64,000 nucleotides of DNA. Origin: Chrysemys picta bellii. Taxonomy: Eukaryota. The notes under the pieces were generated by a model, which was not told where the DNA came from, made no database searches, and worked only from the letters and a program-made list of their open reading frames with translations. Position numbers and translations under genes: made by a program. The DNA is taken from positions 9,672,001 to 9,736,000 of the forward strand of contig NC_088802.1 in the NCBI RefSeq assembly GCF_011386835.1, read 5' to 3'. Of this stretch, positions 7,494-63,361 are shown in pieces (positions within the stretch are counted from its first letter, which is position 1; the number at the start of each line of letters is the position of its first letter).

Positions 7494-7653
7494 TCACTTA
7501 AAGCAGATATATACAGTAACAACCTTAGCGCCTTCGGACCTCATACAAGTAAATAAAGTGAGAATCTTTATAACGCTGCTGCTGATCACCATTTTGCTTT
7601 CTAATCAGCATTAAGCTGTTCCAAAGCTTTCTTAGTCCTCTACAACTACACAC
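7494..7653 (-). pseudogene. Histone H2B pseudogene with an internal deletion of the histone fold
   Basis: The minus strand reads RYKDSHFIYLYEV (cf. [13 protein letters not shown]), directly fused to EGAKVVTVYICFK* (cf. [13 protein letters not shown]). The start appears as GTG at 7653. A degenerate stem-loop (aaaggtctctttacaagctac) lies near 7420-7440. Confidence 0.7.
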
Positions 7654-7699
7654 CTCTACCAGACTCCGTCTCTTTCTGAGCATACAAGAAGTCATAGTT

Positions 7700-7890
7700 C
7701 CTCTTTATATTGCCTATAGTCGGACCTGAGTGAAAACCTAGATAGCCTGCTCCTCCCCCCCCTCCCCTCGGCTAGCACTGACCCCAACCTCCTTCAAGCC
7801 AACATGGAACAATCCCCCTTTCCAACGGCGATATGCAAATTAAGGATTCCAACATTCCACTTTTCATTGGTTCCCTTGGGAAACCAATCA
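7700..7890 (-). promoter_or_regulatory. Promoter of the pseudo-H2B: TATA-like, H4-box-like, octamer and CCAAT elements
   Basis: atataaagaggaact (shared with the intact H2B promoter at 52516-52530), GGTTTTCACTCAGGTCCG at 7738-7721, ATGCAAAT at 7833-7840, ATTGG near 7866 and CCAAT near 7884. Confidence 0.6.
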
Positions 7891-8134
7891 AACACCGCGA
7901 ATGTTTGAAAGAAAACAGAAAACATGGAGAAGTGACTTTGCTCCCACTATTAATTAGAAGCTATTGCTTAGATTGTGAACTAGGAGTAAGGAAGGTGTAT
8001 TCGTACAGCACCTAGCACATTGGGACTTCATTCCTGAATGGGGTTTGTTTGATACTGCAATACAACTCAATATTTGTTAAAATAATCCTTTAATTTAACC
8101 CTTTATCCATTTATGAGATATTCATACTATGGAT

Positions 8135-8527
8135 GAGTGGCTCTCAACCTTTCCAGACTATTGCCCCCCTTTCAGGAGTCTAATTTGCCTTGTGTACCCC
8201 CAAGTTTCACCTCACTTAAAAACTACTTGCTCACAAAATCAGACATAAACATACAAACGTGTCACAGCCACTGGTACTGAAAAAGTGCTGACTTTCTCCT
8301 TTTTACCATATAATTATAAAATAAATCAATGGGAATATAAATATTGTGCCTGCATTTCAGTGTATAGCCTATAGAGCAGTATAAACAAGTCATTGTCTGT
8401 GTGAAATTTTAGTTTGTCCTGACTTCCCTAGTGCTTTTTCTGTAGCTGGTTATAAAACTAGGCAAATATCTAGATGAGTTGAGTACCCCCTGAAAGACCT
8501 CTGTGTACCCCTGGTTGCGCACCACTG
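8135..8527. mobile_element. hAT-like non-autonomous element (agtggctctcaacc family)
   Basis: Ends agtggctctcaacc / ggttgcgcaccactg. Closely similar copies are at about 27132-27535 and 36879-37280. Confidence 0.65.
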
Positions 8528-8624
8528 CTGTAGACCAGGGTGTGTGTGTGTGTGGGGGGGGGGGAAGTGGACTGTTTTACACAATGTCCCTCCTCCATTC
8601 CTGTTAAAATCAGAGTCCTTGTCA

Positions 8625-8858
8625 TACTAAAGCAGGGTGGGGAAAGGAAGTGCTGGCCCAGAAAAGGCCCTTTGGAGAGGCCCAAAGCGCTCAAGAAGCA
8701 GGAGAAGAAGCTTAAGAGGAAGAACAAAGCAGCGAAGAAAAAAAGCCAGGAAGAAACTAAAGGACCTTATAAAATCAGGAGCTACTTCTGCATCCCTTAT
8801 GCAGTGGGAAGCATCTAGAGAAAGTCCTCAAAGTCACACAACTATTGATTCACCCTAA
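8625..8858 (+). pseudogene. 5'-truncated H1-like relic (C-terminal tail only), paralog of the gene at 58763-59258
   Basis: LKKQEKKLKRKNKAAKKK, a frameshift in an A-run, then ARKKLKDL...SASLMQWEASRE...*. DNA matches the minus strand of 58760-58910 (cttctgcatcccttatgcagtgggaagcatct vs cttctgtatcctttatgcagtgggaaacatct). A histone stem-loop follows. Confidence 0.7.
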
Positions 8859-8872
8859 GGAAAGAATCGGAA

Positions 8873-8888
8873 GGCTCTTTTAAGAGCT
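8873..8888 (+). terminator. Histone mRNA 3' stem-loop (one G-U pair) of the H1 relic
   Basis: GGCTCTTTTAAGAGCT followed by ACCCC. Confidence 0.75.
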
Positions 8889-9301
8889 ACCCCATAACGT
8901 TCTCCAGATGAGCGTTAGCACAGATGGCCCCAGTTTTGTTTGATTTCGTTGCATGTGTGTGGAGCCAAAATCCTGGTTGTGAGATGCGAACCCTGCGGTG
9001 AATGGGAAGAAGGAAGGCAAACAGGGGCTGTAGGAACTCGTGTTTCAGAAAGCATTGCATTGTTTACCAGCACTAAAAACCTGTTTTAACACCAGCATTG
9101 GGGTAATCTCGATAAAGTCCCCGGGCTTTATAGCGCTGTCGGCTTTCCCGAACTGCGTATCATAAACTACATTGCTCAACGCTGCTAGTACTTGAATGAA
9201 TGGGGCTTTCTTTGCAACGCAAGTATGTTTCCCTGATTACTGGGGGTTGTCACTTCAACCCTTCCTTACGACACCCGGCACCCAAGCGTTCGCACACAGA
9301 A

Positions 9302-9344
9302 TCCGCTCTTTTGATGAACGCTGGGGGTGGTTCTGAAAAGAACC
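9302..9344 (-). terminator. Histone 3' stem-loop plus HDE (U7 site) of H1-like gene A
   Basis: Minus strand GGTTCTTTTCAGAACC-ACCC at 9344-9329, with purine-rich AAAAGAGC about 17 nt downstream. Confidence 0.9.
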
Positions 9345-9379
9345 GTTTTGGTTTTGTTTTTCGCTCCTGGCCTGAGCCG

Positions 9380-9916
9380 TCACTCCAGAAGGAAGGTGCC
9401 CTTAATAATATCTTCTAAGATTTGCTTCCTGCGCGTTGCCACCGTCCCCCTGATTTTGCCCGGGCTCCCGCTGACCCTCTTGGGCCGTGCAGCAGCCGGT
9501 TTGATTTCCCCGCTGGGGTCATTTGGCCCTGGGGCAGCTGTTCCTGTCTTCGCCGAGCTCTGGCGCCTCTTGGCCGCGGCTGTTTCCCTCGTTTTTGCTT
9601 TGGCGGCGCCGCCTCCCCGCTGGAGCCTGAAAGAGCCCGAGGCGCCGCTGCCGCTGACCCGACGCAGGGCCCCTTGGCTCAGGAGATAACGGAGCACAGC
9701 CTTGATGCGGCCCTTGTTCTTCCGCACGTCGTATCCCTCGCCCTCCAGCGTCTTCTTGATGGCGGCAAGAGAGACGCCTCTGCCGGCAGCGGGGACAGCA
9801 GCAGCCCGGAGAATGACCTGGCTGAGAGTCGGTTTCCTCCTTCTCTTGCGCCGGGGATTCTCCCGAGCCGCGCGGGAGGCCGCAAAAGCCGCGGGGAGAG
9901 AAACTGAACCGGGCAT
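9380..9916 (-). CDS. Divergent, arginine-rich linker histone H1-like protein A (178 aa)
   Basis: Winged-helix motif VSLAAIKKTLEGEGYDVRKNKGRIK...SGSGASGSFRL, intronless, with stem-loop and HDE. ATG 9916 was chosen because the ORF-track ATG at 10099 lies upstream of the H1 promoter elements. Confidence 0.9.
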   Translation of the reverse strand: MPGSVSLPAAFAASRAARENPRRKRRRKPTLSQVILRAAAVPAAGRGVSLAAIKKTLEGEGYDVRKNKGRIKAVLRYLLSQGALRRVSGSGASGSFRLQRGGGAAKAKTRETAAAKRRQSSAKTGTAAPGPNDPSGEIKPAAARPKRVSGSPGKIRGTVATRRKQILEDIIKGTFLLE

Positions 9917-10007
9917 GTCCCTGCGACCCAATCCCAGCTGCTGCCACCCAGACCCGCACGTGGGGCCGCCGCCCTGACACTGAGCCCGGCGGCCGCCACT
10001 CGAGGCC

Positions 10008-10087
10008 AGATAGAGAGCAGAGCCCGACGCAACCGAATCAATCCCCCGCTTTACTCCTGCTCCAGCGCCTCCCCCCAGCCTGTGTTT
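10008..10087 (-). promoter_or_regulatory. H1-type proximal promoter of gene A
   Basis: AC box AAACACA (10087-10081), motif TTGATTCGGTTGCGTC (10041-10026), and the TATA position degenerate (ctgctcTCTATCT vs ctgctcTATATAA in gene E). Confidence 0.75.
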
Positions 10088-40822: not shown

Positions 40823-42391
40823 TCAAGAGATCAGTGTGAGGTGGACTCCTCCGCCCAAGTAGAAGAAAGGGAAAACTTTTTCCCCATTGAAGGAGGCCAA
40901 TATCATAGTCGTATGGTCATCTTCATAAAATGCCACCCAATCCCCTTCGTAATCCAGACAAACCCCGATCTTCCCAGGCCTCCCACTATGAGGTTGGGGG
41001 GTCTCAGAGGAGCCGAATGCCTCCCTCCGAAGCCACCAGCGCCCTTGAGACCAGATCCCATTCTCGGGGCTAAGAGTGAGCCATTCCTTTCTCTTCACGG
41101 ACTCTCTGGCGACCCCCACGGCCCACTCCCTCTGATCCCCAAACTCTACCTCCCAGTAATGTCTCCCTGAGGTGAACCCCTTGGAGCCCAGTACACAGGG
41201 AGCAAGATCAAATCTGTGGGGATTCTCAGGCAAGTCCTGTTGTGGTTTCTCTCCCGATCTCACAGATTTCCCATCGGCAGACACAATGAGCCAAGGGTTC
41301 GCGGTGTCAGGATCCAGAATCACATCCGCTGCGGGTGGGGAGAGAGAGAGAATCAGAGCGTTAGATCTGGCTGTGTACAGCACATGAGGTCAGAAAGATC
41401 TACAGATACTGGGCTTCTCTCCCATAGACCATCCCTGGCAGTGCTCCAAGTATCTAGAGCTGAGTGAGTTCCGTGGGCATCTGGCCAACATTGCCAGCAA
41501 CCAGTTTCATGCGTGCCTCATGTATCTAGGTTCAACAGCCACAGCATTTGGGGTGCTCACTACCTGCATCCCACCTGGGAGTGCCTGGGAACGGTCATCC
41601 TCCACGAATTGCTTTAGGAGACTCCTCAACCACCAGCGTACCTGGGAAAGGGCATCCGCTCCTGTAGCCCCTTAGTGGTGGGGCTGGTCAAAAGTCTTCC
41701 TTCCCCTGAAACTGTTCCAGTGGCAATTGTGGGGTTTGATGAAAGGAAAAGGTTCTGCTTTCCTTGATTTTTTTTTTTAAGTTGCTGTTTTTTCATTGAA
41801 AAACTAAACAACACACATCCGTGCAAAAAAACAGACCAAATTGATTATTTTTCCGTTGTTGGCCAAAACATCTTCCATTTTCACTCTCCCTTCACCTTCC
41901 CCCAGACCGAAAATGTTGCTTTCCAAGTTGGTGGTTGTTTGCTTGCTTTAAAGAAAGGTCACATTTTTCAGCGCGGGGGCAAATTTTCCAATCATCTCTA
42001 TTTAAAAGCATGGGGCTCTTCCCCTCTGCCCAAGGCCCCACCCCTCCTCTTCTGCCTCCCCTCACCTGCTGGAGCCCAGAGCGCGCACACACACACACCC
42101 CGCCAGCCCCAGTGCACCGGCTTCAGGGAGGAGCATGGGCCATGCAAGGCGGTTTGGGGAGGCACAGCCTTCCCCAGTTTATGCTATCCACCACCCATGC
42201 AAAAGCTTCCTCAGTCGCTGGAGTGCACCAGGAAGCTCATCAGCACCTCCAGTGGCTGTGAGAAAGCATCACACCGGGGAGTGTGTTAGGCTCAGGGTTA
42301 GGATGGATGGATTACCTTTGAATTTCTCCAGAAGCTCACTTCTCTGAGGGAAAGCCTCACGGATGAATTTTGGATCAGAAGGAAGAGTCAT
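40823..42391 (-). CDS. TRIM-derived locus 3: intact B30.2 exon, possibly a stand-alone B30.2 protein of about 193 aa
   Basis: Terminal exon 41328-40823 is open (ADVILDPDTANPWL...GRHYWEVEF...FPFF). The preceding exon 42418-42316 (SEGKFQ...LEKFK) contains an in-frame ATG at 42391, and joining 42391-42316 to the terminal exon is in frame. The start choice is inference. Confidence 0.55.
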
Positions 42392-46389: not shown

Positions 46390-47550
46390 ACCACAACTAC
46401 TGATAAGTGGTCTCCTGCCAAGCTCTAAGATACAACCACATTTGCTTCGATCCCTCTTGCTTTGATCCCTCAGACAGAAACAAACACCTACAGGATCTCT
46501 ATCAAGCATTCTTAAAACTACAGTACCCACCTGGTGAAGTGAGGAAACAGATTGACAGAGCCAGAAGTGTACCCAGAAGTCACCTACTACAGGACAGGCC
46601 CAACAAAGAAAGTAACAGAACACCACTAGCTGTCACCTACAGCCCCCAACTAAAACTTCTCCAGCGCATCATCAAGGATCTACAACCTATCCTGAAGGAT
46701 GATCCCTCACTCTCACAGACCTTGGGAGACAGGCCAGTCTTCGCTTACAGACAGCCCCCCAACCTGAAGCAAATACTCACCAGCAACTACACACCACACA
46801 ACAAAAACACCAACCCAGGAACCAAACCCTGCAACAAACCCCGGTGCCAACTCTGTCCACATATCTATTCAAGGGACACCATCATAGGACCTAACCACAT
46901 CAGCCACACCATCAGGGGCTCGTTCACCTGCAAATATACCAATGTGATATATGCCATCATGTGCCAGCAATACCCCTCTGCCATGTACATTGGCCAAACT
47001 GGACAGTCTCTACGCAAAAGAATAAATGGACACAAATCTGACAGGAATCATAACATTCAAAAACAAGTAGGAGAACACTTCAATCTCTCTGGTCACTCAA
47101 TAACGGACCTAAAAGTGGCAATTCTTCAACAAAAAAACTTCAAAAACAGACTCGAACATGAAGTTGCAGAACTGGAATTAATTTGCAAATTAGATACCAT
47201 CAGATTAGGCCTGAATAAAGACTGGGAGTGGTTGAATCATTACAAAACCTCAACCTAATTTACCCACTACTAATTTCTCCCTATTGTTACTCACACCTTC
47301 TTGTCCACTGTCTGTAAAGGGCCACTTTCATTACCACTTCAAAAATTATTTTTCCTCCCTTGGTATCCTGCTGTTAATTGATTTCTCTCGTTAGACTGAC
47401 CTCACACTTGGTAAGGCAACTCCCATCCTTTCATGTATTTATACCTGCTCCTGTATTTTCCACGTCATGCATCTGATGAATTGGGTTCTAGCCCACGAAA
47501 GCTTATGCTCAAATAAATTTGTTAGTCTCTAAGGTGCCCCAAGGACTCCT
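46390..47550 (+). mobile_element. Penelope-like retroelement, 5'-truncated (end of RT region plus GIY-YIG endonuclease)
   Basis: ORF 46407-47258 contains VIYAIMCQQ...MYIGQTGQSLRKRINGH...HFN (GIY-YIG). The 3' end reads cccacgaaagcttatgctcaaataaatttgttagtctctaaggtgcc. Confidence 0.85.
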
Positions 47551-48631: not shown

Positions 48632-48668
<37 letters not shown>

Positions 48669-49928
48669 TTAATCAAAACCCAATTTTCCAGTGAAAAAGA
48701 GGTTTCGATGGAAATATTTGACCAACCCTAGTAAAAATCATCTCAGGAACGTTGTGATTCTCATTAAAAACCTACAGAAAACCCTGTTAAAGACTGAGGC
48801 TGTATTGCATAGACAGGCCAAATAAACAGGGATGGCTGACTGGGGATAGCAGCCTTAGGCCCAGTTTATAAGATGATGCAACATATTGGCATCTAGTTTC
48901 CTTCTAGGATCCAGTTCGCAGTGCAACAATACCTCATCTGGAAGGAACAATTGCATCTCTCTAGCTCAGCTAGTTTTTCCTGTCCCTAGTGCCACATACT
49001 TTCCCTGGCAGCTTTTACCAGTTCAAGGGCAGGGACCAATTGTCCTCTGAGAGATGTCAAAGGATAAGTCTGAATCTCCTTCCTTTGGAGTGTCTTTTCC
49101 TGTGTTTTAGGGAGCTTGCAGGGATTAGAACTGGATGAAAAATGGGAGGGGGTGGGGAAGTTGCATAAAAATGAAATTTCCAAGTTATTTTCATTTCAAA
49201 GTGTGTGGAAATACCCATGTTTAGAGCTCTGTTTTTCTCTCTCTCTCAGAAACTTTGTTGGAAATGATTGAGATCCAATAAAGTGAGTGGTAGGCATGGG
49301 CGCCAGGTTTGCATAATTTTTGGTGGTGCCAAGGAGCTGCCTTCTCTGCCATTGTGCAACGATTTTGTGACTCATATTAAGACAGTGAGTCTTCATCTCC
49401 CTCTAGTTACTGGTCCATGTACTATACCAATTAATAAGCCTGGTCCTTTAGTACCCAGTGGTAGCGGCTGGTGCTTTTAGAGTTGAAGGACTCAGGTTCA
49501 AACCTCACTATTTCCATAATTTAAGTGCAGCTCCCTACAGTGGAAGCTTTTGTAAAAGCTGCTCTTCCGTCCCCACTTCCCTGGTGGGGCTGCTCTCAGA
49601 GCAGGGACAGAGCAGGAAAGGGACGAAGAGGAAGCTACTATATTCAGTCCCTGTGTTGCTGTCACGCCCAGCTCTCCAGCCGCACACAGACAGGGAGAAT
49701 GGAGGAGACTGTGCCTGTGAGCGGGGATATAGAGCCCTCTATAGTCCAGAGGGGAAGTGACACATTTTAGATACGCTGCTCCAGCCCTGTAGGAGAAAGG
49801 AAGTGGTAGCCTTGAAGAGAAAAGGGTCAGCGCCCATTTCTCTGAATGCTAGTATTTAAAACGTCAGTGTCTACTGGAACTAGAGCGTCAGAGTTAAGGT
49901 GCTTCAGGTGCTGTTTCTATTCAATATA

Positions 49929-50071
49929 NNNNNNNNNNNNNNNNNNNNNNNNNNNNNNNNNNNNNNNNNNNNNNNNNNNNNNNNNNNNNNNNNNNNNNNN
50001 NNNNNNNNNNNNNNNNNNNNNNNNNNNNNNNNNNNNNNNNNNNNNNNNNNNNNNNNNNNNNNNNNNNNNNN
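49929..50071. other. Assembly gap (143 N)
   Basis: Run of N characters. The true distance and orientation across the gap are not guaranteed. Confidence 0.99.
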
Positions 50072-52492: not shown

Positions 52493-52522
52493 TCATTCAG
52501 GTCGGCACCCAGTCTATATAAA
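52493..52522 (+). promoter_or_regulatory. Proximal promoter of the variant H2B: H4-box-like element and TATA, no octamer seen
   Basis: TCATTCAGGTCG at 52493-52504 and TATATAAA at 52515-52522. No ATTTGCAT or ATGCAAAT was seen in the preceding 300 nt or so. Confidence 0.6.
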
Positions 52523-52583
52523 GAGGAACTTCTAGACGGCTAGCGTCTTTTTATGTTGGTCAGAAGCGTGGAAGTGAGGGAGG

Positions 52584-52949
52584 ATGTCTGCGCGTGTGCC
52601 GAAGAAAGGTGGGAAGAAGCTGATTGCGGAGGGTGCGAAGAAAGCCGATAAGAAGCGTAAGAGGAGCCGCAAAGAGTCTTACTCGATTTATGTCTACAAG
52701 GTGTTGAAGCAGGTCCATCCGGACACGGGCATTTCTTCCAAGGCCATGAGTATTATGAATTCCTTCGTGAGCGATCTCTTCGAGCGCATCGCCTCAGAGG
52801 CGTCCCGCTTGGCTTTATACAACAAGAGATCGACTATCAGCTCCAGAGAGATCCAGACCGCGGTGCGCCTGCTCTTGCCTGGAGAGTTGGCGAAGCATGC
52901 TGTGTCGGAAGGCACTAAGGCTGTCACCAAATATACCAGCTCTAAGTAA
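52584..52949 (+). CDS. Variant histone H2B (121 aa) with a novel N-terminal tail
   Basis: Near-canonical fold [46 protein letters not shown]...AVTKYTSSK, tail [20 protein letters not shown], plus TATA, stem-loop and HDE. Confidence 0.95.
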
Positions 52950-53006
52950 AGCTTTGCGTCCTATACCTGTGCTAAGGTGAAACCATCCACCGAATTAAGA
53001 CCCAAA

Positions 53007-53047
53007 GGCCCTTTTAAGGGCCACCCACTTTTCCCATAAAAGAGCTG
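53007..53047 (+). terminator. Histone stem-loop plus HDE of H2B
   Basis: GGCCCTTTTAAGGGCC-ACCCA at 53007-53022 and AAAAGAGCTG at 53038-53047. Confidence 0.92.
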
Positions 53048-54689
53048 CTCATAGTAAGGGAATTTAGTCTAATCAGATTAGTTACGGATTGAGATGTCAT
53101 CAGTTAAAATGTTCATCATTCCTGATTCTATAAAATTGATAAAAGCAATATTGGTAAAAGAAAACCGGTAAAAAGGTTGGTAGTTTTTTAACATATCCAC
53201 ATAAACAAGAATTATTTGTGGAAGTTCGATTGGGCTTATAAAATGCGGTTTACGTGCTATACATTCTTTGCATAGCAGATACTCTAATCCCTTAATAACC
53301 TTGCTTTTTATATTGAAATACGGGTATCAAACGCAGCTAGAGAATTTTTTTTGTAGAAACTTTAACTTGTATTGATGAATATTGCAAACTGTTGAAGCGT
53401 TTTCATTCGCAAAGGACTTGGATACCAAGGAGTCTTCATTTCCCGAAGACTGGAAAAACAGCCGCCCCAAAGCTATAACGAAGCGGAAACACCACAATCC
53501 GAACAGAAAGGGGATGTGGAAGGAACAAGGTATAAACTAAAAAACTTTTTATCTTCCCCAAAATAAACCTGAAGCCACCCGGCTGTTTCTCTCTTTACCA
53601 CTTCCCAGCAATATATTAACAAAATCCGCTGATAAAATTTCAGTCTGAAATGGTGGTTTTCCTCACACAATTGCAGCTTGCTGTCACTGTCCCTTTCAGG
53701 CAGCAAACCAGGCACTGTCTTCTGCGAAGCTGTCGCAGGAGCCTGGGCATGGCCGTGGAGTGATGCTAACTAAGCAGCAACCTACTTGTAAATCTACATT
53801 GCAGGTGCAGCCAGCTCGGAAATACACCAGGAGCCGTGGGGCAAGATCCACTCGCTGCCTTTCCAGCTGAGGGAAAACCAACCGCGCTCAGAAATATACG
53901 GAGCGGGTGGCGGCTCCTGCTGCTCGAGATCACTGGTTTATCAGGTCGGGGCGGCAGCAGGCGTGTGATGTTTATCTGAGGGGGGAGCAGGTCCTTTGTG
54001 TTGTGAAAGTCTCTTTAGAAATCGAATTCCTCCTAAGTCTTCAACTGGAGTTTTTATAAGACGGGGCCACCTACCTATCTACCGTCCCTGCTCCCCCCGC
54101 ATGTACATATTCCAATCTGCCCTTGAAAACGCAGGAATCTTGGCCCTCCACCCCAGCCAGCCCTGGCTTCAGGCCGGAGTGCAGCTGAGGCAGAAACAGG
54201 ACAGTGCTGTCCCGTCCTTGAACCCCTCCCCAACCACGGGTAGTCACGAAAACCTTTCGAGCATCCTACCATGACTGCATTATGGGCAATACGAGAATGC
54301 ATATAATCCGTGGGGATTTAGGTTGTTTCCAGATTACTTGTACGTTTCCTCCACCTGTCACATCACATTCTGAGATAAGGTTGGGAATAATTCTGGGGTT
54401 TACAATGTTCATAGTTCGATACACACAACTCCTATAGCTTCTGGTCACTTGGTCGCCATATCTGATTTTTCACACTCGTTCCCGTCAGGCAGTGACAGAG
54501 GCTCGTCATATTTAATAATATAGTAAACCAGCCCGCATATCTCGCCTCTTTCTAAAGGGGAGGGGGAAGACCTAAAAAGCCTGTTTCTGATTTCCCCAGC
54601 GCACCTACTGTTTTCCGCTGAAATCAAAGGGAGATTTGCCAGAGCTAGGGATGCAGTGTAAGGGAGACATCAGGGCATTCGTGCTTAAA

Positions 54690-54729
54690 GCTCTCCTGGA
54701 CATGGTTTGGGGTGGCTCTTAAAAGAGCC
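54690..54729 (-). terminator. Histone stem-loop plus HDE of H1-like gene C
   Basis: Minus strand GGCTCTTTTAAGAGCC-ACCCC at 54729-54714, with AGGAGAGCT downstream. Confidence 0.9.
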
Positions 54730-54763
54730 GTTGTTGTTTCGTTGCGGTGAATCCATAGGTCTG

Positions 54764-55345
54764 TTAAGATTTCCGCTGGGGAGCCATTGCCCCGCGAGCA
54801 GAGGAAGCCGCAGAAGTCTTGCCAGCTCCTTTGCCTTCGGCCATGTTCCGTATCTTCCCGGGGGGCTTTGTCCCCGTCCCTTTGTTTTTCTTCTCGATCT
54901 TTTTAGCCTCCTTGTTGGCAAGCGGCTTTTTATCTGCCTGTCTCTTCTGCTTTGCCGGCTTCTTGGCCTCCTTGGTCTTGGGCAGCTGCAGAACAAGCTG
55001 AGTTTTGCCGACCCCAGGCTCTTTGCAGAGCTTGTAGGAGCCGGGAGCCCCAGTCACTCCAGGCACCTTGCACAGGATGTTGTTGGTGACCAGCTTCTTG
55101 AGCGCCGCTTTGATGCGGCTTTTGTTCCTCTGGACGTCGACTCCCGTCGCCGCCAGCTCCTTCTCGATGGCCACCAGGGAGAAGCCCTTGCGGCTCTTGG
55201 AGAAATCCACGCTCCACAGGATGAGCTGGGCAAAAGCCGGCCGCTGTCTTCGAGGCGGCTTCTTCTTCCTTCTCTTCTTTTTCCTTTGGCTGGCTGGAGC
55301 TGGAGCTGCGACTGGAGCTTCAGCTGCCGTTTGCGCTGTATTCAT
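54764..55345 (-). CDS. Divergent H1-like protein C (193 aa)
   Basis: Globular domain FSLVAIEKELAATGVDVQRNKSRIKAALKKLV...GAPGSYKL with a Lys-rich tail. Intronless, with stem-loop/HDE and a good start context (gagATGa). Confidence 0.9.
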   Translation of the reverse strand: MNTAQTAAEAPVAAPAPASQRKKKRRKKKPPRRQRPAFAQLILWSVDFSKSRKGFSLVAIEKELAATGVDVQRNKSRIKAALKKLVTNNILCKVPGVTGAPGSYKLCKEPGVGKTQLVLQLPKTKEAKKPAKQKRQADKKPLANKEAKKIEKKNKGTGTKPPGKIRNMAEGKGAGKTSAASSARGAMAPQRKS

Positions 55346-55477
55346 CTCGGCCTAAAGGGGGCGCCGCTTCTGCAGCCACCAGCACTGCTCCAGGCGCCTG
55401 CGGCGCAGTCTGTCCCCCAGTCGCTGCTCTCGCCGCTCACGCCGCCGACTGGAAGCCAGGGCTGCTGCCCGCGGCTA

Positions 55478-55565
55478 ATTATAGCCGGGACCCCGACGCA
55501 ACCGAATCAACCTCCCGCCCCTCCTGCTGCCGCAGCTCTAGGCTCCTCTCCTCCAAAGTGTGTCT
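55478..55565 (-). promoter_or_regulatory. H1-type promoter of gene C
   Basis: TATAAT (55483-55478), TTGATTCGGTTGCGTC (55510-55495), GGGCGG GC box, and AC-box variant AGACACA (55565-55559). Confidence 0.75.
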
Positions 55566-56319
55566 CTCCGGCACCGAGAACCTGAGTTTCTAAGAGCACA
55601 CGAGGCCTCCTGTCATTCCACAACAGCCATCTTGTCCAGATCGGGAGGGTGTTTCATTCCCTGGCGTTGGTGTTAAGGAATGAACCTCCTGCTGAGGGGT
55701 GTGGGGGGAGAGAGAAAGTGAAAATAAAACCACCAAAGCCTCGCACACATCTCCAGCTCTTCACTCAGACTGGAGCAGTATTTGATATTTTTCTCTTAAC
55801 GAATGTTAAAATTCTCAGCCTTACCTCTGACAGAAAAAGGAACAGGGATGAATGAACAAATCAACCTATGAAGGAATTCAATAGATGATTTTGTGGAGTG
55901 GGGAGGAATTGTTTTTAAATAGAGCAGGTGAATTTATCAGTCAAGATCATCAGGGATCCATCCCATCCCAGCTGCTGGGACTGGAAGACGGGATAGATCA
56001 CTAGGTAATTGCCTTGTTCTGTCCATTCCTTCTGAAGCATCTGGCATTGGCCACTTCAGAAGACAGGATATTGGGCTAGATGGACCCAGTATGACCATTT
56101 GTGCTGATGGTAGAGCATGACAGTTTTAGGAAGAAAAAAAGAGAGAAAGAAAAGGGGCTTTCTCACTGGTTCATTTAGGATCCTCATTCTCATTGGCTCA
56201 GGGGACCTGGACTCCTACTAGCCAATCAGAATGGAGGAACTGCTCAGCTCTAAGGTTATAACAAAAGTCGCTCAACCATTCTGTTTTGTTGAGAGAAGAA
56301 AGGTGTTCTGTTAATAGAG

Positions 56320-56641
56320 GTGTGTAAGGCTGCTTGTGAGGAAAGGAAGTTGCCTCGGTGAAGTCTTGTTCAGTAGGGTGGGGCTACGGTTTCCTGTGGA
56401 TAGGCTGTATAAGCTGCTACATGAGATGTAGTAGAAATGTTGCCTTTAGATAATTTAGTTGTTGTGCTGAAGTATCTGAGAATGAGTCCTGGGAAAGTGA
56501 GACGAGCCAAATTGTTCTGCACCATCCATAGTTTGCTGTCTACAAAGATTGAAGAGCTGAACATGCTCTTGTGGGGTCTTGCCCAATATTGAGGCTGTGT
56601 TTTTGTGTGAGAAAGCACCACCCAGCAACAGTAGTAACTAA
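56320..56641 (+). pseudogene. Histone H2A pseudogene
   Basis: Collinear fragments RVGLRFPVDRLYKLL (cf. RAGLQFPVGRVHRLL), LVVVLKYL (LAAVLEYL), KD-EELNMLL (NDEELNKLL) and GVLPNIEAVFL (GVLPNIQAVLL), with stops, frameshifts and deletions. ATTGG, CCAAT and TATA-like elements lie at 56190-56252. Confidence 0.8.
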
Positions 56642-57507
56642 CACTGAATGTAGTATCAAGAACTAAGGCTGTGTCTGTTTTTGCCTTCCTATCCCCTTTA
56701 TAGGAACAGGCATAGCAAATTCTCCCTGACACAGATAGGAAGAAACTTCTGATAATACATTAGCCCTACTCTTCATTCTAGCTAGCTATTGTTAGCTACG
56801 GGGATTTCCTTTAAATTTTACCCACATTTGGTTTCCTTCATTGATCTATATGATCTTCATGATAGAAAACACTGCAAAGGGAGCACTGATTGCAGGTAAT
56901 GCATATTCCACCGGTTTACAATGCATATAATTCCATAGTGTGTGCATACAACAAAATAAGAATTTGTCTCAGTATGTGGCCAGCTAAGAAGTATACAGCT
57001 CCACTGGGTATCTATGTATATGGGATATGTTCATTTGCACATTTCTGAAAATTTGTTCCTTAAATGAGAAAAGTTCAGATACATAAACGGGAGATTTTCA
57101 TGGCCGTTAAACTCAGAGTTGGGAGTCTTCATTAGAATTAGGCTATTCCAGTTAGGCCTAATTGTTATTTGTGACTTTGAAGCTCTTTCTTTAAAAGTCT
57201 ACAAGGACAAAAGGATGCAGAGTTACAGGAGAATTAAGAGCACAGTCATGAAGGATCTCACTGCTGCAGGGCTTTGTGTAATTTTTTTGGCAGGTGAATG
57301 TATTGCTTAATGTTTGTAATCCTCAGCCAAACACATTTGTCATGTAGTTACATAGCCCAGTTTTGTGACCTATCCCAGACAGCAACTCATAAATATTTCG
57401 GACAACGCCAGCGGGGGAACTAGCTCAGTGCCCTGGAGCGGGGAGGGCGAAAGGATTGTGCAAATCGGGGCTGGTGCTTTTGGGGGGCAACATGAGTGGG
57501 ACGGAAG

Positions 57508-57590
57508 AAACACAGGCTGGGGGGAGGCGCAGGGGCAGGAGTAAAGCGGGGGATTGATTCGGTTGCGTCGGGCTCTGCTCTCTATCTGGC
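57508..57590 (+). promoter_or_regulatory. H1-type promoter of gene B
   Basis: AAACACA at 57508-57514, TTGATTCGGTTGCGTC at 57554-57569, and a degenerate TATA position as in gene A. Confidence 0.75.
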
Positions 57591-57678
57591 CTCGAGCGGC
57601 GGCCGCCGGGCTCAGTGTCAGGGCGGCGGCCCCACGTGCGGGTCTGGGTGGCAGCAGCTGGGATTGGGTCGCAGGGAC

Positions 57679-58215
57679 ATGCCCGGTTCGCTTCGTCTCC
57701 CCGCGGCTTTTGCGGCCTCCCGCGCGGCTCGGGAGAATCCCCGGCGCAAGAGAAGGAGGAAACCGACTCTCAGCCAGGTCATTCTCCGGGCTGCTGCTGT
57801 CCCCGCCGCCGGCAGAGGCGTCTCTCTTGCCGCCATCAAGAAGACGCTGGAGGGCGAGGGATACGACGTGCGGAAGAACAAGGGCCGCATCAAGGCTGTG
57901 CTCCGTTATCTCCTGAGCCAAGGGGCCCTGCGTCGGGTCAGCGGCAGCGGCGCCTCGGGCTCTTTCAGGCTCCAGCGGGGAGGCGGCGCCGCCAAAGCAG
58001 AAACGAGGGAAACAGCCGCGGCCAAGAGGCGCCAGAGCTCGGCGAAGACAGGAACAGCTGCCCCAGGGCCAAATGACCCCAGCGGGGAAATCAAACCGGC
58101 TGCTGCACGGCCCAAGAGGGTCAGCAGGAGCCCGGGCAAAATCAGGGGGACGGTGGCAACGCGCAGGAAGCAAATCTTAGAAGATATTATTAAGGGCACC
58201 TTCCTTCTGGAGTGA
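57679..58215 (+). CDS. Arginine-rich H1-like protein B (178 aa), near-identical inverted copy of gene A
   Basis: Differs from gene A at 4 residues (VS/LR near the start, K/E, G/R), or 7 nt differences in 537 by hand count. Stem-loop and HDE are present. Confidence 0.9.
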   Translation: MPGSLRLPAAFAASRAARENPRRKRRRKPTLSQVILRAAAVPAAGRGVSLAAIKKTLEGEGYDVRKNKGRIKAVLRYLLSQGALRRVSGSGASGSFRLQRGGGAAKAETRETAAAKRRQSSAKTGTAAPGPNDPSGEIKPAAARPKRVSRSPGKIRGTVATRRKQILEDIIKGTFLLE

Positions 58216-58250
58216 CGGCTCAGGCCAGGAGCGAAAAACAAAACCAAAAC

Positions 58251-58290
58251 GGTTCTTTTCAGAACCACCCCCAGCGTTCATCAAAAGAGC
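58251..58290 (+). terminator. Histone stem-loop plus HDE of gene B
   Basis: GGTTCTTTTCAGAACC-ACCCC at 58251-58266 and AAAAGAGC at 58283-58290. Confidence 0.9.
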
Positions 58291-58695
58291 GAATGTCTTT
58301 GCTCCTTGGTGCTATATTTTGTAACGCGGCTTTTTTTAGAGATTAGGGAGGGTTGTGTGTGTTGTATGTATTCCTAGAATAGAAAGCAAACGGCAGCACT
58401 ACCATTGATGAATGCATTTTATGATAGGCAGGTCAGGGAAAACCAACAACACCAGGACAAGGCAGGGAACCTTCAAGATTAGTTAGATCCTGCCATTGAA
58501 TTAACTGACTTAAAATAAAGGGGGGTTGACCTTATTTTGTTGTTTTTTTGATTTGGTAAAGAAGGCAACTGACCCACGTTTATATGGTTTTCACCTTCCC
58601 TAACGCCTAGGATCTGGTCCTAGACAAATACAGAAAAAATGTTTTTTTAAAGGTATATTTGTGCTAACGTTCTTTTAGGGAAAGTTTTTGGGGGT

Positions 58696-58711
58696 GGCTC
58701 TTAAAAGAGCC
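58696..58711 (-). terminator. Histone stem-loop of pseudo-H1 D
   Basis: Minus strand GGCTCTTTTAAGAGCC-ACCCC. Confidence 0.85.
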
Positions 58712-58762
58712 TTTGGATTGATTGATTTTTTTCGGTAGAATGAGTCAGTAGAATTATGCCTT

Positions 58763-59258
58763 TTAGGGCTTCCCCTCGAGAGATGTTTCCCACTGCATAA
58801 AGGATACAGAAGCGACAGTTTCTCCAGTTCCCTCTTCCTGATCCACAAGAGCCTCTGCTTTCTTCTTGGCTTTTTTCTTCGCTGCTTTTTTGTTCCTCTT
58901 GCCCCCTGCTTCTTTGGCGATTTGTCCTTCTTCACCAGCGGAGGGGTTAGCTTCGCTTCTGCGATGAGCTTGTAGGAGCCCGGGACCTTAAGCAAGACAT
59001 TCGTGGTGACCAGCTTCCCAAGCTCCGCTTTGATACGGGCTTTGTTCTTCTTAACATCGATCCCCGCCGCCGCCAGCTCTTTCCTGATGACGCCCAGGGA
59101 GACCTCCCCGGAGTGCTGGGAGAAATCCACGGTCTGGAGAATGAAATGGGCAAAACCTTCGCGGTCTTTTCGAGTTATCGGTACCGCCTTCCTCTTCTTC
59201 CGCTTCGTTCTCTTGCTGGCTGGCGCCTGGGAAGGGGCAGCGGCTGATCTGTGTTCAT
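58763..59258 (-). pseudogene. Frameshifted H1-like gene D (same subfamily as C)
   Basis: ATG AAC ACA (MNT, as in gene C) at 59258 is out of frame with the globular domain (VSLGVIRKELAAAGIDVKKNKARIK). A second shift near 58.9 kb is needed to reach KRNKKAAKKKAKKK...ASVSFMQWETSLEGKP*. There is no in-frame ATG before the upstream TAG at 59310. Confidence 0.8.
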
Positions 59259-59982
59259 CTGGGTAGATACAAGAGGCGCCGCGTTTTCTATTTTTGATAG
59301 TTGTTCTCTACTTGCTACGGCGCCGCCTGCACCTCACGCTGCAGCAGATTGAAAGCCGGGCACTGCTGCTGCAGCCCGAGGGGTAGTTATACCCCAGTGT
59401 CTGACGCAACCGAATCAACCTGGTTCTATCCCCGCCTCTCTCTGGTCCTCTAGCACTAATAACCCGTGTTATGTTCGCCTGGTGACGCTGTTTCGTTCAC
59501 TCAATCTCTGTCAGGGAAAATATACAAAAATCTCGAATCTGCTCCCCGGCTAAGGAAGCCAATAAACAAAAATCGTGATTTTTCTCCAAATTATTGTTAA
59601 AATTCCATCATTTTCTCAGGATAGTCTAGGAGAAGAGAAGGGTTTACACACTATGGCATTTTAAATCCATGACAGATACTTTGGAGGCGGGGAAACATTG
59701 GTTCTATTTTTGCTTGGTTTCCCGGATGAGCTAATGAAAAGGAGAAATGTTTGGATCCTTAATTACATATCAAGAAGGCGAGGCTGATGGGTAGATACAG
59801 AAGTGAAGGGTGAGACCTGTACTAGCGAAAGGTTAGGTGGTAGGCGGTCTCAGTGTCCCTTCAGGTCTGCCACTATTTAATACATGGGAACTCCGCGATC
59901 CTACGTTTCGTTTTTTTTTTTTTTTTTTTGGGGGGGGGTTGTTTGTTTGTTTGTTTTTGTAGGGAAAAGAATAGGGAGAAAG

Positions 59983-60272
59983 GTGTGTGTTTGTACGATG
60001 AAGAAATGTAGACAGATGCTGATTGGTGATGTCTCAAAGAAGGGTGCGGAAAAAGAGTAGGAAAGCGTTTTATTCCGCATACCTGTAAGAGATGCTGAAG
60101 TAGGTTCACATGGGCACTCGGGCATGTTTTCTAAGGTCCTGAGCATCTTGAATTCTGCCGCAAATTATCTGTCTGAGCGCATTGCCACAGAATTTATCGT
60201 GCCTGTCCGTATACAGCAAGCTCTGGGAAGTCAGCTACAGGAAAGTCGAGGCTGCTTGGATCTTGGTCTGAA
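59983..60272 (+). pseudogene. Histone H2B pseudogene of the same variant lineage
   Basis: KKCRQMLIGDVSKK (cf. [14 protein letters not shown]), KSRKAFYSAYL*EMLK*VH, SGMFSKVLSILNSAANYLSERIATE and SCLSVYSK...SYRKVEAA, with stops and frameshifts. The start appears as GTG. Promoter relics ccttaattacatatc and tcaggtc lie upstream. Confidence 0.8.
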
Positions 60273-60611
60273 GCGTGAGTGGGTTTGTCCTTTCTAGTCC
60301 CGTCCCCCCCGTCTCTTCCCTTTCCCTGTAATGCTAAGTGTCAATGATCTTGTTATTTATATAACTAGCCAATCCTAAAGTCTTTTCCTCAATAATTTTG
60401 AGTCCTGCTGGGTATTTATTCCGTTAAATCATTCTTGTCCGTTTTAAAGTTATTCCATTTCGATGATATGGTTATGTTGGATGACACCTTGGTCCTGTAA
60501 TGTGAGACAGCAAATGTAGCACCTGAATTATCAACTTCAATCAAACCATTACTTTCCACCCCAATAGGCGTGTGCTGGGAACTCGACATTTGAGGCACCC
60601 ATAGCCTCTAG

Positions 60612-60836
60612 GTTTCAGAGTAACAGCCGTGTTAGTCTGTATCCGCAAAAAGAAGAACAGGAGTACTTGTGGCACCTTAGAGACTAACACATTTATTAGA
60701 GCATAAGCTTTCGTGGACTACAGCCCACTGAAGAAGTGGGCTGTAGTCCCATCCGAAGAAGTGGGCTGTAGCCCACGAAAGCTTATGCTCTAATAAATGT
60801 GTTAGTCTCTAAGGTGCCACAAGTACTCCTGTTCTT
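60612..60836. mobile_element. Penelope-like terminal remnant forming a long hairpin
   Basis: 77-bp inverted arms at 60653-60729 and 60760-60836 with one mismatch. The sequence resembles the 3' end of the GIY-YIG element. Confidence 0.75.
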
Positions 60837-61653
60837 CCCATAGCCTCTAGACACTTTTGCAGATTATAGGCTAATACCTTTAAACCAGACGCATAAAACA
60901 ATCGGGATCTAAATACAACGAAATAAAATAAAATGCCTCTATTGTAAAACCCAAAGTATGATATCAAAATTAGCTTCCCCTTTTACTAAAAACCTAAACC
61001 TTAAAACAATATAATTATTTTCCAAACACATGAAAATAATTATTCTTCCTCCCTGTTACATTTTTTTCTGCATGTGTATCCTATAGTTTTCTGCAACTTT
61101 TGCTCTTTCTACTGAAGTTAATGGATGTTTTGACATTAATTTCAGCCAGGTGAATGAGAGTAGGATGCATCCCTATATAAATTAAAACAGCAGTACGTTT
61201 AAAGTACATTGTAATGTTTTACTATGACAGAAAACTAGAGATATTTATTTCCTTTTGAAATTAGACAAAGCCTCATAGGCGAGTATGGGGAAGCCTAGGT
61301 GTGTTTCTTGTTTGTCTTTGGAAGGGCACTGCACAAAAAAACAAAGAAAGAAATCATTTAATTTCTTTGTGTGGGATACCTCACTCCGCCTTAATACTGT
61401 TCCCTCGATATCTTGAGGGCAGGCACAGAATTGAAATTGTAATTTAAGATTAAACCCAAATTTTGTTTACTTTTGGAGGACAGGCAGGTGGATAAATCGA
61501 GGGTTTTGTCGATTTCTGGCGCGGGGAGCTTATTCAGTGGATCAAAAAAATGCAGCGAATAAAACCACCTAACAGTCCTAGCCTGGGGACGTCTACGTTA
61601 ATTGATCAAAAAGCCAGTGGGGCTTTTAAAATTAGAGATCAGTGGAGTTTCAG

Positions 61654-61781
61654 AAACACAGATTTCTGAGACGCTAGGAGGCAAGGAGAGGCTGATTGAT
61701 TCTGTTGCGTCCGCCGTCGGGGGAGGCGGTGCGCGCGGCGACCTGGTTGAGTCGGTTGCGTCGGGTTCTGCTCTATATAAA
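61654..61781 (+). promoter_or_regulatory. H1-type promoter of gene E
   Basis: AAACACA at 61654-61660, two one-mismatch copies of the 16-mer (61696-61711 and 61747-61762), TATATAAA at 61774-61781, and a TG-box-like TGTGTTT at 61300. Confidence 0.8.
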
Positions 61782-61860
61782 GCCCGTTAGGCGACCTGCG
61801 CGATCAGTTTGGAGCGGAGAGTCGTGGAAGCTTCGTGGGAGCTTGTCGCTTTGCAGCTCA

Positions 61861-61938
61861 GAGGCGGCGGCGGCGGCGGGAGCAGCAGCAGCAGCAGCGG
61901 TTGCAGCGAGGCGGCGGCGGTTGCGGCGGCGGTGGCGG
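61861..61938 (+). repeat. GGC/GCA trinucleotide repeat tract in the presumed 5' UTR of gene E
   Basis: gaggcggcggcggcggcgggagcagcagcagcagcagcggttgcagcgaggcggcggcggttgcggcggcggtggcgg lies between the TATA box and the ATG. Confidence 0.8.
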
Positions 61939-61968
61939 TTCTTGTGGCTGTGAATACAGTGGGGAGAA

Positions 61969-62505
61969 ATGCGAAATTTAAGCTCCGCCTCCCAGGCTTC
62001 TCTCTCAGAAGGGGCTCTAGCTACTTTTCTACCTAAGAAGAAAGGGAGGCCGTCTCTTCCCGACCTCATTCTGCGGGCTGTTTGCGTCTCTACAGCCCGC
62101 AAGGGCGCCTCTCTGGCTGCCATCAAGAAGGCGCTCTTGGCCGAGGGGTACGACGTGCAGAAGAACAACGGTCGCCTGAAGGCGACGCTCAGCTCTCTCG
62201 TTAGCAAAGGGCTGCTGCAGCGGGTGACGGGCAGCGGCGTCTCGGGATCCTTCAGGGTCAACAAGCGCCAGAAGAAGGGGGGCGCCTTGAAAGCAACGAA
62301 GAAAAAAACCGCCGTCAAGAGACCCAAAACCCAGATAGCGGCCCGGAGGTCTCCGAAAAAAATTAACCTCACAGCAGCTAGGAAGGCAAAGGGGCCCGGC
62401 AGGGAAACCAAGTCAGCTGTTAAAAAACCCAAGGCCCACAAAAACCCGGCCAGACCCAAGGGGAGGGCTGCCCCCCGCGGCAAAGCTGGAGGCAAGAGGC
62501 ATTAA
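61969..62505 (+). CDS. Divergent H1-like protein E (178 aa)
   Basis: Globular domain GASLAAIKKALLAEGYDVQKNNGRLKATLSSLVSKGLLQRVTGSGVSGSFRV with a basic tail, full promoter and stem-loop/HDE. Confidence 0.92.
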   Translation: MRNLSSASQASLSEGALATFLPKKKGRPSLPDLILRAVCVSTARKGASLAAIKKALLAEGYDVQKNNGRLKATLSSLVSKGLLQRVTGSGVSGSFRVNKRQKKGGALKATKKKTAVKRPKTQIAARRSPKKINLTAARKAKGPGRETKSAVKKPKAHKNPARPKGRAAPRGKAGGKRH

Positions 62506-62543
62506 AAACACATTCCTCGTCAACTAATAAATATAAACTCAAA

Positions 62544-62585
62544 GGCTCTTTTAAGAGCCACCCTCAATATTCACTAAGTGAGCTG
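62544..62585 (+). terminator. Histone stem-loop plus HDE of gene E
   Basis: GGCTCTTTTAAGAGCC-ACCC at 62544-62559 and AAGTGAGCTG downstream. Confidence 0.9.
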
Positions 62586-63194
62586 TTGGTTCGCCGGGAG
62601 AGCATAGGCGGTGCGGCGTGAGCTTTTACCGACAAAGAGGCTTCTTGGAGGGAAATCTTTGATTTGGCATTTTATTCTGTATTTTACTAACAAGATTGCC
62701 TAGGACAATGTAAAAAACTCGAAAATTTCCTATTGAAAAATATTCCAAGTTGATTTTTAAAGTAATCAATAAAATTGTCCTCCCTAGAAAAAAAGTTACG
62801 TGAAAAAAATCTTCACGTAAACAAATACTTGAAAATGATCGTTTTACTCCGCAGTAATGATCAAAATTGTAACCTCAATCCACTTATTACGGATTTTATA
62901 TCCACATTTGTCGTTTAACGATTCTAGCAGCGAACTAGAGCCCGGACTTTCGCTGGTGCCTGTTTCCTATCAGGTCCGGCGGTAACTTACTGCCCAATGA
63001 AAGTGCAGGCCTCCTTCCCCTGACCAGCCCCTGTCCTCCCCCCACAAACGCTCTACCAGTTATTTCATCCAATTAGCACCCGCCCTTGCCGCTATACATG
63101 AGGTCAAAGTTGTACCGTATTTCCCGTTGTGGTTATTTGATTGCGGTTTTCTGTTTTTGTGGTGTAGCGATGGTGAGACATTCACTGTCTGGTT

Positions 63195-63361
63195 GTGGTG
63201 AGAACACGGCAGAGTGCTCGGAAATCTGCTTGGGGGAGATGCCACAGAATCAGCAGGCACCTAACACTGTTCGGAAGAGTGATCTTGCTGCAAATGGGAT
63301 GAAGAAGATTAATCCGTATCGATTTAGCACTTGTGGCGCTGCAGGAGGTTTGCTAATACGG
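63195..63361 (+). pseudogene. Histone H3 pseudogene, 5' part, interrupted by a MITE
   Basis: VVRTRQSARKSAWG / PQNQQAPNTVRKSDLAANGMKKINPYRFST / VALQEVC*Y aligns to H3 residues 1-54 with two frameshifts. CCAAT boxes lie near 62994 and 63069, with a TATA relic near 63093. Confidence 0.75.

Follow-up and report, generated by a model that had tools for sequence, protein, structure and literature searches.

A satellite cluster of variant histone genes among B30.2 genes on the MHC chromosome of the painted turtle

A cluster made up only of non-canonical histone genes was found on the major histocompatibility complex (MHC) chromosome of the painted turtle, Chrysemys picta bellii. It lies in a 64,000 bp stretch of DNA, here called the window, that corresponds to positions 9,672,001 to 9,736,000 (forward strand) of NC_088802.1 in RefSeq assembly GCF_011386835.1 (contig C12 below). 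The window contains six intact, intronless histone open reading frames (ORFs), of which four encode H1-like proteins (H1-A, H1-B, H1-C and H1-E), one a divergent H3-like protein and one an H2B variant. The ORFs, their 3' stem-loops and their promoter elements are conserved, and ratios of non-synonymous to synonymous substitution (dN/dS) are well under 1, which bears out a first-pass annotation that took these genes for functional non-canonical variants. We are confident that the genes are functional variant histones, and consider it probable that the locus as a whole is best explained as a functional, MHC-linked satellite cluster of variant histones.

Gene content of the cluster

The window was surveyed by ORF listing, with Pfam, and by tblastn with canonical Chrysemys histones from contig C1; a more sensitive tblastn was used for relics. 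The proteins find their best database matches in the emydids Terrapene, Emys and Chrysemys. All six intact ORFs match the Pfam Linker_histone or Histone family. When the window was queried with the genome's own canonical histones, no H4 and no canonical-type gene was returned, and the more sensitive search recovered six relics: two of H2B, the 3' half of an H1, an H2A, H1-D and an H3. Both the six intact intronless genes and the relics (two H1, two H2B, H2A and H3) without any canonical histone had been listed in the first-pass annotation, and that inventory stands. The histone features, with coordinates within the window and the means of detection, are as follows (CDS, coding sequence; HDE, histone downstream element).

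7497-7538 (-): H2B relic, C-terminal 14 codons recognisable (tblastn)
8591-8906 (+): H1 relic, the tail of an H1-D-like gene with a degenerate stem-loop at 8873-8888 (tblastn, stem-loop pattern search)
9329-10041 (-): H1-A unit, CDS 9380-9916, stem-loop GGTTCTTTTCAGAACC 9329-9344, promoter motif 10026-10041 (ORF, Pfam, pattern search)
11499-12119 (+): H3-like gene, CCAAT 11499, TATA near 11521, CDS 11634-12053, ATTAAA 12114 (ORF, Pfam)
52515-53047 (+): H2B variant, TATA near 52515, CDS 52584-52949, stem-loop 53007-53022 and HDE (ORF, Pfam, Rfam)
54714-55510 (-): H1-C unit, stem-loop 54714-54729, CDS 54764-55345, promoter motif 55495-55510 (ORF, Pfam, pattern search)
56372-56614 (+): H2A relic, two fragments (tblastn)
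57554-58266 (+): H1-B unit, motif 57554-57569, CDS 57679-58215, stem-loop 58251-58266 (ORF, Pfam, pattern search)
58675-59418 (-): H1-D relic (relic frame 58675-59258), motif 59403-59418, out-of-frame ATG near 59258, stem-loop 58696-58711 (tblastn)
59965-60256 (+): H2B relic with stops and frameshifts (tblastn)
61696-62584 (+): H1-E unit, motif copies 61696-61711 and 61747-61762, TATA, CDS 61969-62505, stem-loop 62544-62559 and HDE (ORF, Pfam, Rfam)
63195-63331 (+): H3 relic with a canonical-type tail, in two frames (tblastn)

The H1-A and H1-B units are 97.9% identical over 945 bp, while the neighbouring pair of relics (8591-8906 and 58657-58924) share 67% identity. As only the A/B unit retains close to 98% identity, the arrangement fits an old inverted duplication followed by later gene conversion. 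Relative to the loggerhead turtle Caretta caretta, H1-D has lost 1 nt just after the ATG and 13 nt in the tail, and because of these deletions its longest open frame passes through its own stem-loop. By its sequence H1-D appears to be a decaying paralogue of H1-C, and its lesions differ between two Caretta assemblies and the window. The relics at the two ends of the cluster also have relatives in other turtles; a better-kept counterpart of the H2B relic at 7497-7538 is found at 5650-5983 of Caretta locus L006, and the H3 relic at 63195-63331 has positional counterparts in both Caretta and Emydura.

Conservation and selection in turtles

The turtle lineages sampled include some that split approximately 200 million years (My) ago. 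Caretta has a matching gene set in matching order, with identical ORF lengths of 121, 193, 178, 178 and 139 amino acids (aa), in two TRIM-flanked blocks that are approximately 53 kb apart. In the side-necked turtle Emydura, H2B, H1-C, H1-E and the H3 relic are found between TRIM genes, and the pig-nosed turtle Carettochelys has H1-C, an H1-A-type gene and H1-E. Orthologues of H1-A are present in Caretta, Platysternon and Carettochelys, and H1-C is present in every turtle sampled. The H3-like gene was found in the soft-shell Pelodiscus and in the big-headed Platysternon, where it adjoins H1-A. A 121 aa H2B is annotated in at least 10 turtle species, and the best 120 database matches to the window's H2B are turtle orthologues, followed by canonical H2Bs. 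In Emydura, the space between H1-C and H1-E, occupied in cryptodires by H1-B and H1-D, contains an additional H3-like remnant (L007 6480-6788(+)).

Selection was assessed from dN/dS, calculated by the Nei-Gojobori method with codon bootstraps.

H2B: 0.04-0.05
H1-C: 0.34-0.41
H1-E: 0.19-0.38
H1-A: 0.32-0.52
H3-like: 0.37-0.43 against Pelodiscus (intervals 0.21-0.74) and 0.49-0.58 in closer pairs, with intervals that reach 1

In deep comparisons the bootstrap intervals exclude 1, and we conclude that the intact ORFs are under purifying selection and that the cluster is not decaying. The first-pass annotation had held that disrupted ORFs in most related species together with dN/dS near 1 would count against it, and this is not the pattern observed. 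A cluster in which ORFs remain open by chance, the sequences drift neutrally and any transcripts are noise would be in keeping with the share of relics, one half, among the histone-like pieces of the window, and with the H3-like interval that reaches 1 between close species. However, ORF lengths that are identical across approximately 100 My, ORFs that are intact across the deepest turtle lineages and in birds, dN/dS significantly below 1 and conserved regulatory elements make such a graveyard hardly credible.

Relatives in birds and crocodilians

When the H1-E protein was used as the query, matches were returned from ostrich, ducks, geese, several Neoaves and Alligator sinensis. These loci, on small chromosomes or scaffolds, contain an H1-like gene with a perfect stem-loop and HDE, and its neighbours are RING-PRY-SPRY genes, MGAT1, a TFIIS-type zinc-ribbon gene or a C-type lectin gene. 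The H1-like gene of ostrich, crane and duck has an intact H3-like ORF 2-10 kb away. The H3-like orthologues have derived residues in common, namely EDW where H3 has EDT and LVRCL(R/Q)G where H3 has LARRIRG. No matches to H1-E were returned from squamates, mammals or amphibians, but the search was word-indexed and can miss distant relatives, so this is not evidence of absence.

In a maximum likelihood tree that included canonical H1, H1.0, H1x and two H1-like genes from contig C24, with H1t left out, turtle H1-A and H1-E form one clade (99/98) that is sister to the bird sequences (80/85), with the alligator basal (87/69). This group is apart from canonical H1, H1.0, H1x and the C24 genes. H1-C forms a long, well-supported, turtle-only branch. 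Judged from the tree and the species distribution, H1-A/B appears to be a cryptodiran offshoot of the H1-E family. The C24 genes (C24:7398800-7408000, L015) are two divergent H1-like genes 6 kb apart, encoding 221 aa (1016-1681(-)) and 151 aa (7254-7709(-)); both match Pfam Linker_histone and they form a clade of their own, away from the canonical and the window H1s.

Turtles and archosaurs separated approximately 250 My ago. Turtles, birds and alligator all have members of the H1-E family and the H3-like gene, which therefore predate this split. The first-pass annotation had described the cluster as a nursery of reptile-lineage variants, which is too narrow for the H1-E family and the H3-like gene. 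H1-C, H1-A and the H2B variant were found only in turtles, by a word-indexed search that cannot prove absence elsewhere.

One of the Neoaves matches, P0021, is the H1 of the crested-ibis MHC; in the tree it groups with the other birds, in the sister clade of turtle H1-A/E. The crested-ibis MHC map lists '1 histone' in the extended BF/BL region, where it is only a listed gene and is not analysed as a variant family (PMC5173252).

Histone mRNA 3' ends

In a scan of the window, Rfam model RF00032 scored above its gathering threshold at 53002, 58716 and 62539. A search for the stem-loop consensus pattern found 17 matches where 2.2 were expected, and added 54714(-), 9329(-) and 58251(+), which are the stem-loops of H1-C, H1-A and H1-B, respectively. 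Each stem-loop is followed by ACCC and then by a purine-rich, HDE-like stretch. Thus, the intronless structure, RF00032 stem-loop and HDE of replication-dependent histone genes are found together in H2B, H1-A, H1-B, H1-C and H1-E, which matches the count of five intact genes in the first-pass annotation, and not in the H3-like gene. The stem-loop and HDE are kept in every orthologue. In H1-A and H1-B the stem reads GGTTCT...AGAACC where the canonical stem reads GGCTCT...AGAGCC, a compensated change at the third stem pair that is kept in four other turtles. No stem-loop was found at the H3-like gene, where ATTAAA lies 61 nt past the stop codon, and its mRNA is probably polyadenylated.

Promoters and a conserved 16-bp element

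The promoters of H1-A, H1-B, H1-C, H1-D and H1-E have in common a 16-bp element, TTGATTCGGTTGCGTC, that replaces the CCAAT box and sits approximately 10 bp before the TATA box, with two copies in the H1-E type. It occurs six times in the window where 0.3 occurrences were expected. It also aligns in the upstream regions of the Caretta, Emydura, ostrich and alligator H1-like orthologues, and was found in all of the turtle, ostrich, crane and alligator H1-like promoters examined. In the 2.37-Gb genome, a slightly degenerate form of the element has 10 sites, six of them in the window, while the reversed control has one. The other four sites (C2:156499781, C7:29544934, C22:12143814 and C25:15124387) are in GC-rich, CpG-type promoter-like DNA, two of them have a second degenerate copy nearby, and at C25 the element precedes, by 141 nt, an ORF that begins like UPF1.

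In the Chrysemys genome, an H1 box, a TATA box and a CCAAT at -95 are found upstream of the canonical H1 genes, and an octamer at -88 and several CCAAT boxes upstream of the canonical H2B genes. In a check for these subtype elements, the variant H1 promoters lacked CCAAT and the H2B promoter lacked both octamer and CCAAT; the octamer was absent from the variant H2B promoter in three species. An H1 box, AAACACA, remains upstream of H1-A. On the opposite strand the 16-bp element reads GACGCAACCGAATCAA, which resembles the canonical ACGCACCAATCA with CCAAT changed to CCGAAT. From this likeness we infer that the element may be an inverted CCAAT element that was disabled by an inserted G and turned into a site for another factor. 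A search for a known factor for the element gave no verifiable match.

The encoded proteins

H1-A, H1-B, H1-C and H1-E cover positions 1-73 or 2-74 of the 74 in PF00538, with E values of 2e-12 to 2e-16, and the H1-D ORF fragment had no PF00538 match in the Pfam search. These H1s differ from canonical H1 by 55-64%, and the closest solved H1s by sequence are the somatic-type H1.2-H1.4 and GH1, not H1.0 or H1x. Their tails are basic but arginine-rich, where those of linker histones are lysine-rich. The ratio K/(K+R) is 0.37-0.40 in H1-A/B, 0.64 in H1-E and 0.73 in H1-C, and is 0.33-0.48 in most of the bird and alligator proteins; overall it is 0.33-0.79 in these H1s and 0.96 in canonical H1. H1-A ends in a conserved hydrophobic-acidic stretch. 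From their sequences, the cluster appears to encode three kinds of arginine-enriched linker histones, H1-E, H1-A/B and H1-C, in addition to the decaying H1-D.

The H2B variant differs from canonical H2B chiefly in a shorter tail and at six fold positions, and this turtle-wide H2B with a shortened tail is under strong constraint. The H3-like protein has a histone fold match (PF00125, Pfam E value 2e-20) and is approximately 44% identical to H3. Its tail and alpha-N are rewritten and its alpha2-alpha3 region is well kept, a pattern from which it would retain the H3-H4 and four-helix-bundle surfaces. A complex prediction for residues 40-139 with H4 scored 0.75, and the best of three controls scored 0.00. 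Among solved complexes 51 of 78 reach this score, and among mismatched pairs 2 of 108 do. Predicted contacts agreed between runs by at least 83% and the partner's predicted local distance difference test (pLDDT) value was at least 73. As solved H3-H4 complexes exist and may have been remembered, the model indicates likeness and is not proof, but it supports pairing of the H3-like protein with H4.

The genes might instead be ordinary subtypes of S phase, as are mammalian H1.1-H1.5 and the six H1s of chicken. They would then be active in any dividing cells, with no specialised role in the germline or elsewhere, and differences between samples would reflect proliferation. In favour of this, five genes retain the replication-dependent stem-loop and HDE, somatic H1.2-H1.4 and GH1 are the closest solved H1s, and the H1 box persists upstream of H1-A. 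However, the H1 CCAAT and the H2B octamer and CCAAT are missing though canonical genes have them, the private promoter element has persisted for over 250 My, the H1s are strongly enriched in arginine and are as far from canonical H1 as stated above, and the H3-like gene is without a stem-loop. We regard ordinary S-phase subtypes as a less likely account, though one that deserves serious weight.

Comparison with named variants

Database names for the cluster genes are no more specific than 'histone H1-like', 'H2B 7-like', 'H3.3' and 'uncharacterized'. In the papers that could be searched, queries for turtle or MHC histones, the evolution of linker histones, transcriptomes of turtle testis and basic proteins of sperm led to no account of these genes. 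A 'histone H2B 7-like' transcript has been published from painted-turtle embryonic gonads, but this name is not unique to the cluster H2B.

The genes might be orthologues of named mammalian germline variants (TH2B, H1t, H3t/CENP-A) descended from an ancestral MHC-linked amniote cluster. In humans, HIST1, including H1t and TH2A/TH2B, is flanked in the extended MHC by BTN/TRIM genes of the B30.2 group, and the turtle cluster also lies on an MHC contig, among BTN/TRIM7-like B30.2 exons. With the fold region alone, TH2B scored marginally above canonical H2B (94.0 and 92.3 bits), which is no real preference. However, over its whole sequence the turtle H2B matches chicken canonical H2B (206.7 bits) better than it matches TH2B (198 bits), and the serines that it has in common with TH2B also occur in an unrelated canonical H2B. 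Nor is there the head-to-head pairing with H2A.1 that is typical of TH2B; no H2A sharing the promoter lies upstream of H2B, and the sole H2A is the relic beyond H1-C. The origin of TH2B (H2B.1) has been inferred to be in eutherians, from a sample with no turtles or reptiles and with chicken as the sole non-mammalian outgroup (Raman et al., PMC8857922).

CENP-A was also rejected as the identity of the H3-like gene. The best solved matches are H3, H3.2 and H3.3, the gene is intronless where CENP-A of vertebrates is an essential, single-copy gene with several exons, and the Alligator sinensis copy has a stop. The galliform MHC 'CenpA' has four exons and a dN/dS of 0.037 (PMC3500228), in contrast to the intronless, fast-evolving H3-like gene, and is not its orthologue. 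When a profile built from the H3-like alignment was run against 1.8 billion representatives, canonical H3 swamped the result (10,787 matches), and the Pelodiscus orthologue was the only gain. None of the cluster genes could be assigned one-to-one orthology with a named variant, in line with the first-pass annotation, which had not recognised them as such, and orthology with the mammalian germline variants is improbable.

Likenesses to known systems remain. The germline histones of mammalian HIST1 (H1t/H1.6, TH2B/H2B.1, TH2A and H3t/H3.4) resemble those of the turtle in being intronless, stem-loop-bearing and MHC-linked beside B30.2 genes, and in having arisen as variants of replication-dependent histones whose promoters have changed. 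H1t, like the turtle H1s, has more arginine than somatic H1 does, though TTGATTCGGTTGCGTC presumably differs from the TE/X-box of H1t. The turtle cluster differs from HIST1 in having no canonical member and in lying away from the main clusters, and orthology of the H2B is unsupported. Like the turtle and bird H1s, H1T2 (H1.7), HILS1 (H1.9) and PL-I combine a winged-helix domain with arginine-rich, fast-evolving tails. However, their genes are polyadenylated, not stem-loop genes, while the turtle and bird genes retain a perfect stem-loop and HDE. H3.Y, H3.5 and cenH3 share with the H3-like protein a rewritten N-terminal tail and alpha-N and a conserved alpha2-alpha3 core; the likeness extends to the predicted H4 pairing and a probably polyadenylated mRNA, but at approximately 44% the identity of the H3-like protein to H3 is far lower than that of H3.Y or H3.5.

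Evidence for transcription

Sequencing runs that we could only guess to be RNA, with contigs that give no strand, level or tissue, were compared with the locus; contig placement covered 54650-60649 in four such runs from four studies. Small RNA-like runs contain 10-19% of the words of 52500-62499. The H1-C unit was covered (54650-55526) in all four runs, and contigs at 57354-58291 and 57817-58249 covered the H1-A/B unit. The H1-D relic is still covered (58759-59213 and others) in runs of one species. The spacers and the relics of H2A and of H2B (59965-60256) carried no contigs. As the coverage is on gene units and not on these spacers and relics, it fits transcripts and not stray genomic DNA, and the genes of the cluster appear to be transcribed. 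The H3-like gene was represented by 0.3-0.5 of its words in RNA-like runs (the DNA-run maximum was 0.54) and by 0.00 in other runs of the same species, which suggests sample-specific expression. Within the placed region, two segments, 56006-56086 and 60608-60649, have very high summed contig depth and many loose ends in all four runs; they are dispersed repeats that recur across many loci or transcripts.

Genomic setting

MHC class II beta exons are found at 0.09-0.73 Mb and class I exons at 0.8-2.1 Mb of contig C12. In a whole-assembly Pfam search, the canonical histone clusters were located elsewhere, at 88.59-88.86 Mb of C1 and 24.3 Mb of C17, and no further histone genes were found just outside the window. 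The locus is a satellite histone cluster, separate from the canonical clusters, among TRIM/BTN-type B30.2 genes. Its two histone blocks are separated by approximately 40 kb that contains PRY-SPRY exons, a RING/B-box exon and a Penelope-like GIY-YIG ORF. The B30.2 exons of the window are most similar to BTN2A/BTN3A and TRIM7. The other features of the window are as follows.

3190-3702 (+), 18943-19467 (-) and 40823-41383 (-): three PRY-SPRY (B30.2) exons
36123-36608 (-): RING/B-box exon
46407-47258 (+): GIY-YIG nuclease-domain ORF of 283 aa, as in Penelope-like retroelements, between the histone blocks
49929-50071 (no strand): assembly gap in non-coding DNA, 2.5 kb upstream of H2B, touching no histone feature

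In the tblastn search of the window, no histone match was found within kilobases of the gap. Matches to class II beta or class I exons on C12 were at 0.09-2.13 Mb and also at 15.7 and 16.4 Mb, and approximately 100 further class I-like exon matches, many with in-frame TGA, are on small unplaced contigs. Elsewhere in the assembly, an H2A-like gene is present in more than 100 head-to-tail copies with a period of approximately 2546 bp, on contigs C330, C342, C173, C1314, C1791, C423, C902 and others (for example L025, C342:7000-12600). It has a long basic and Ser/Glu-rich N-terminal extension, and most copies have one in-frame TAA inside the fold, while a few open copies (228-230 aa) are found on C26, C299 and C1.

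Interpretation

If the cluster is a functional, MHC-linked satellite locus, its H1 and H2B mRNAs would end through SLBP/U7 processing like those of replication-dependent histones, while transcription would be uncoupled from the canonical H1-box/CCAAT and octamer controls. Control of the H1 genes would have passed to a factor that reads TTGATTCGGTTGCGTC, and in a restricted population of cells the variants would take the place of canonical H1, H2B and H3 in chromatin. On balance we favour expression that is restricted to some cell types or stages. That the population in question is germ cells or the early embryo is a reasonable conjecture, though somewhat less likely than not.

A number of points weigh against this explanation. 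Genes with a stem-loop might do no more than track S phase wherever tissue proliferates. The RNA nature of the runs is guessed, and their contigs carry no strand, level or tissue; contig X1 reaches 55526, approximately 75 nt past the expected start of H1-C, and contig X3 spans the whole 945-bp A/B conversion tract, promoter included. A dN/dS of 0.3-0.6 is relaxed for a histone, and the intervals of the closest species pairs touch 1. The H3-like gene of Alligator sinensis (L010 5484-5960(-)) has a single in-frame stop, though it is otherwise alignable, which is either a recent loss or an assembly error. In Caretta, H1-B (by a frameshift) and H1-D are broken. These two losses also belong, with the relics and the inverted duplication that contains the 98% identical A/B unit, to the birth-and-death turnover that the first-pass annotation had proposed.

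A broader proposal is that archelosaurs (turtles, crocodilians and birds) have kept MHC-linked, arginine-rich stem-loop H1s under a single dedicated promoter element, together with a private H3, for more than 250 My as their own germline or early-embryo chromatin toolkit, which would have evolved independently of mammalian H1t, TH2B and H3t. We put this forward as speculation that is more likely wrong than right. If it is true, the cluster could be a living intermediate between H1 and protamine-like proteins, and could be a remnant of an ancestral amniote linkage between histones and the MHC.

Nearly all work on histone variants has been done in mammals, flies and plants. To this the locus adds an H2B variant, a very divergent H3 and three lineages of linker histones that are as yet undescribed. 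The bird orthologues make duck or ostrich usable at the bench, and the almost locus-private TTGATTCGGTTGCGTC is a handle on regulation. Even if expression were somatic and bound to S phase, this would still be an unusual diversification of subtypes. The cluster bears on how a lysine-rich H1 drifts toward arginine-rich sperm proteins, and on why histone and B30.2 genes sit with the MHC in mammals.

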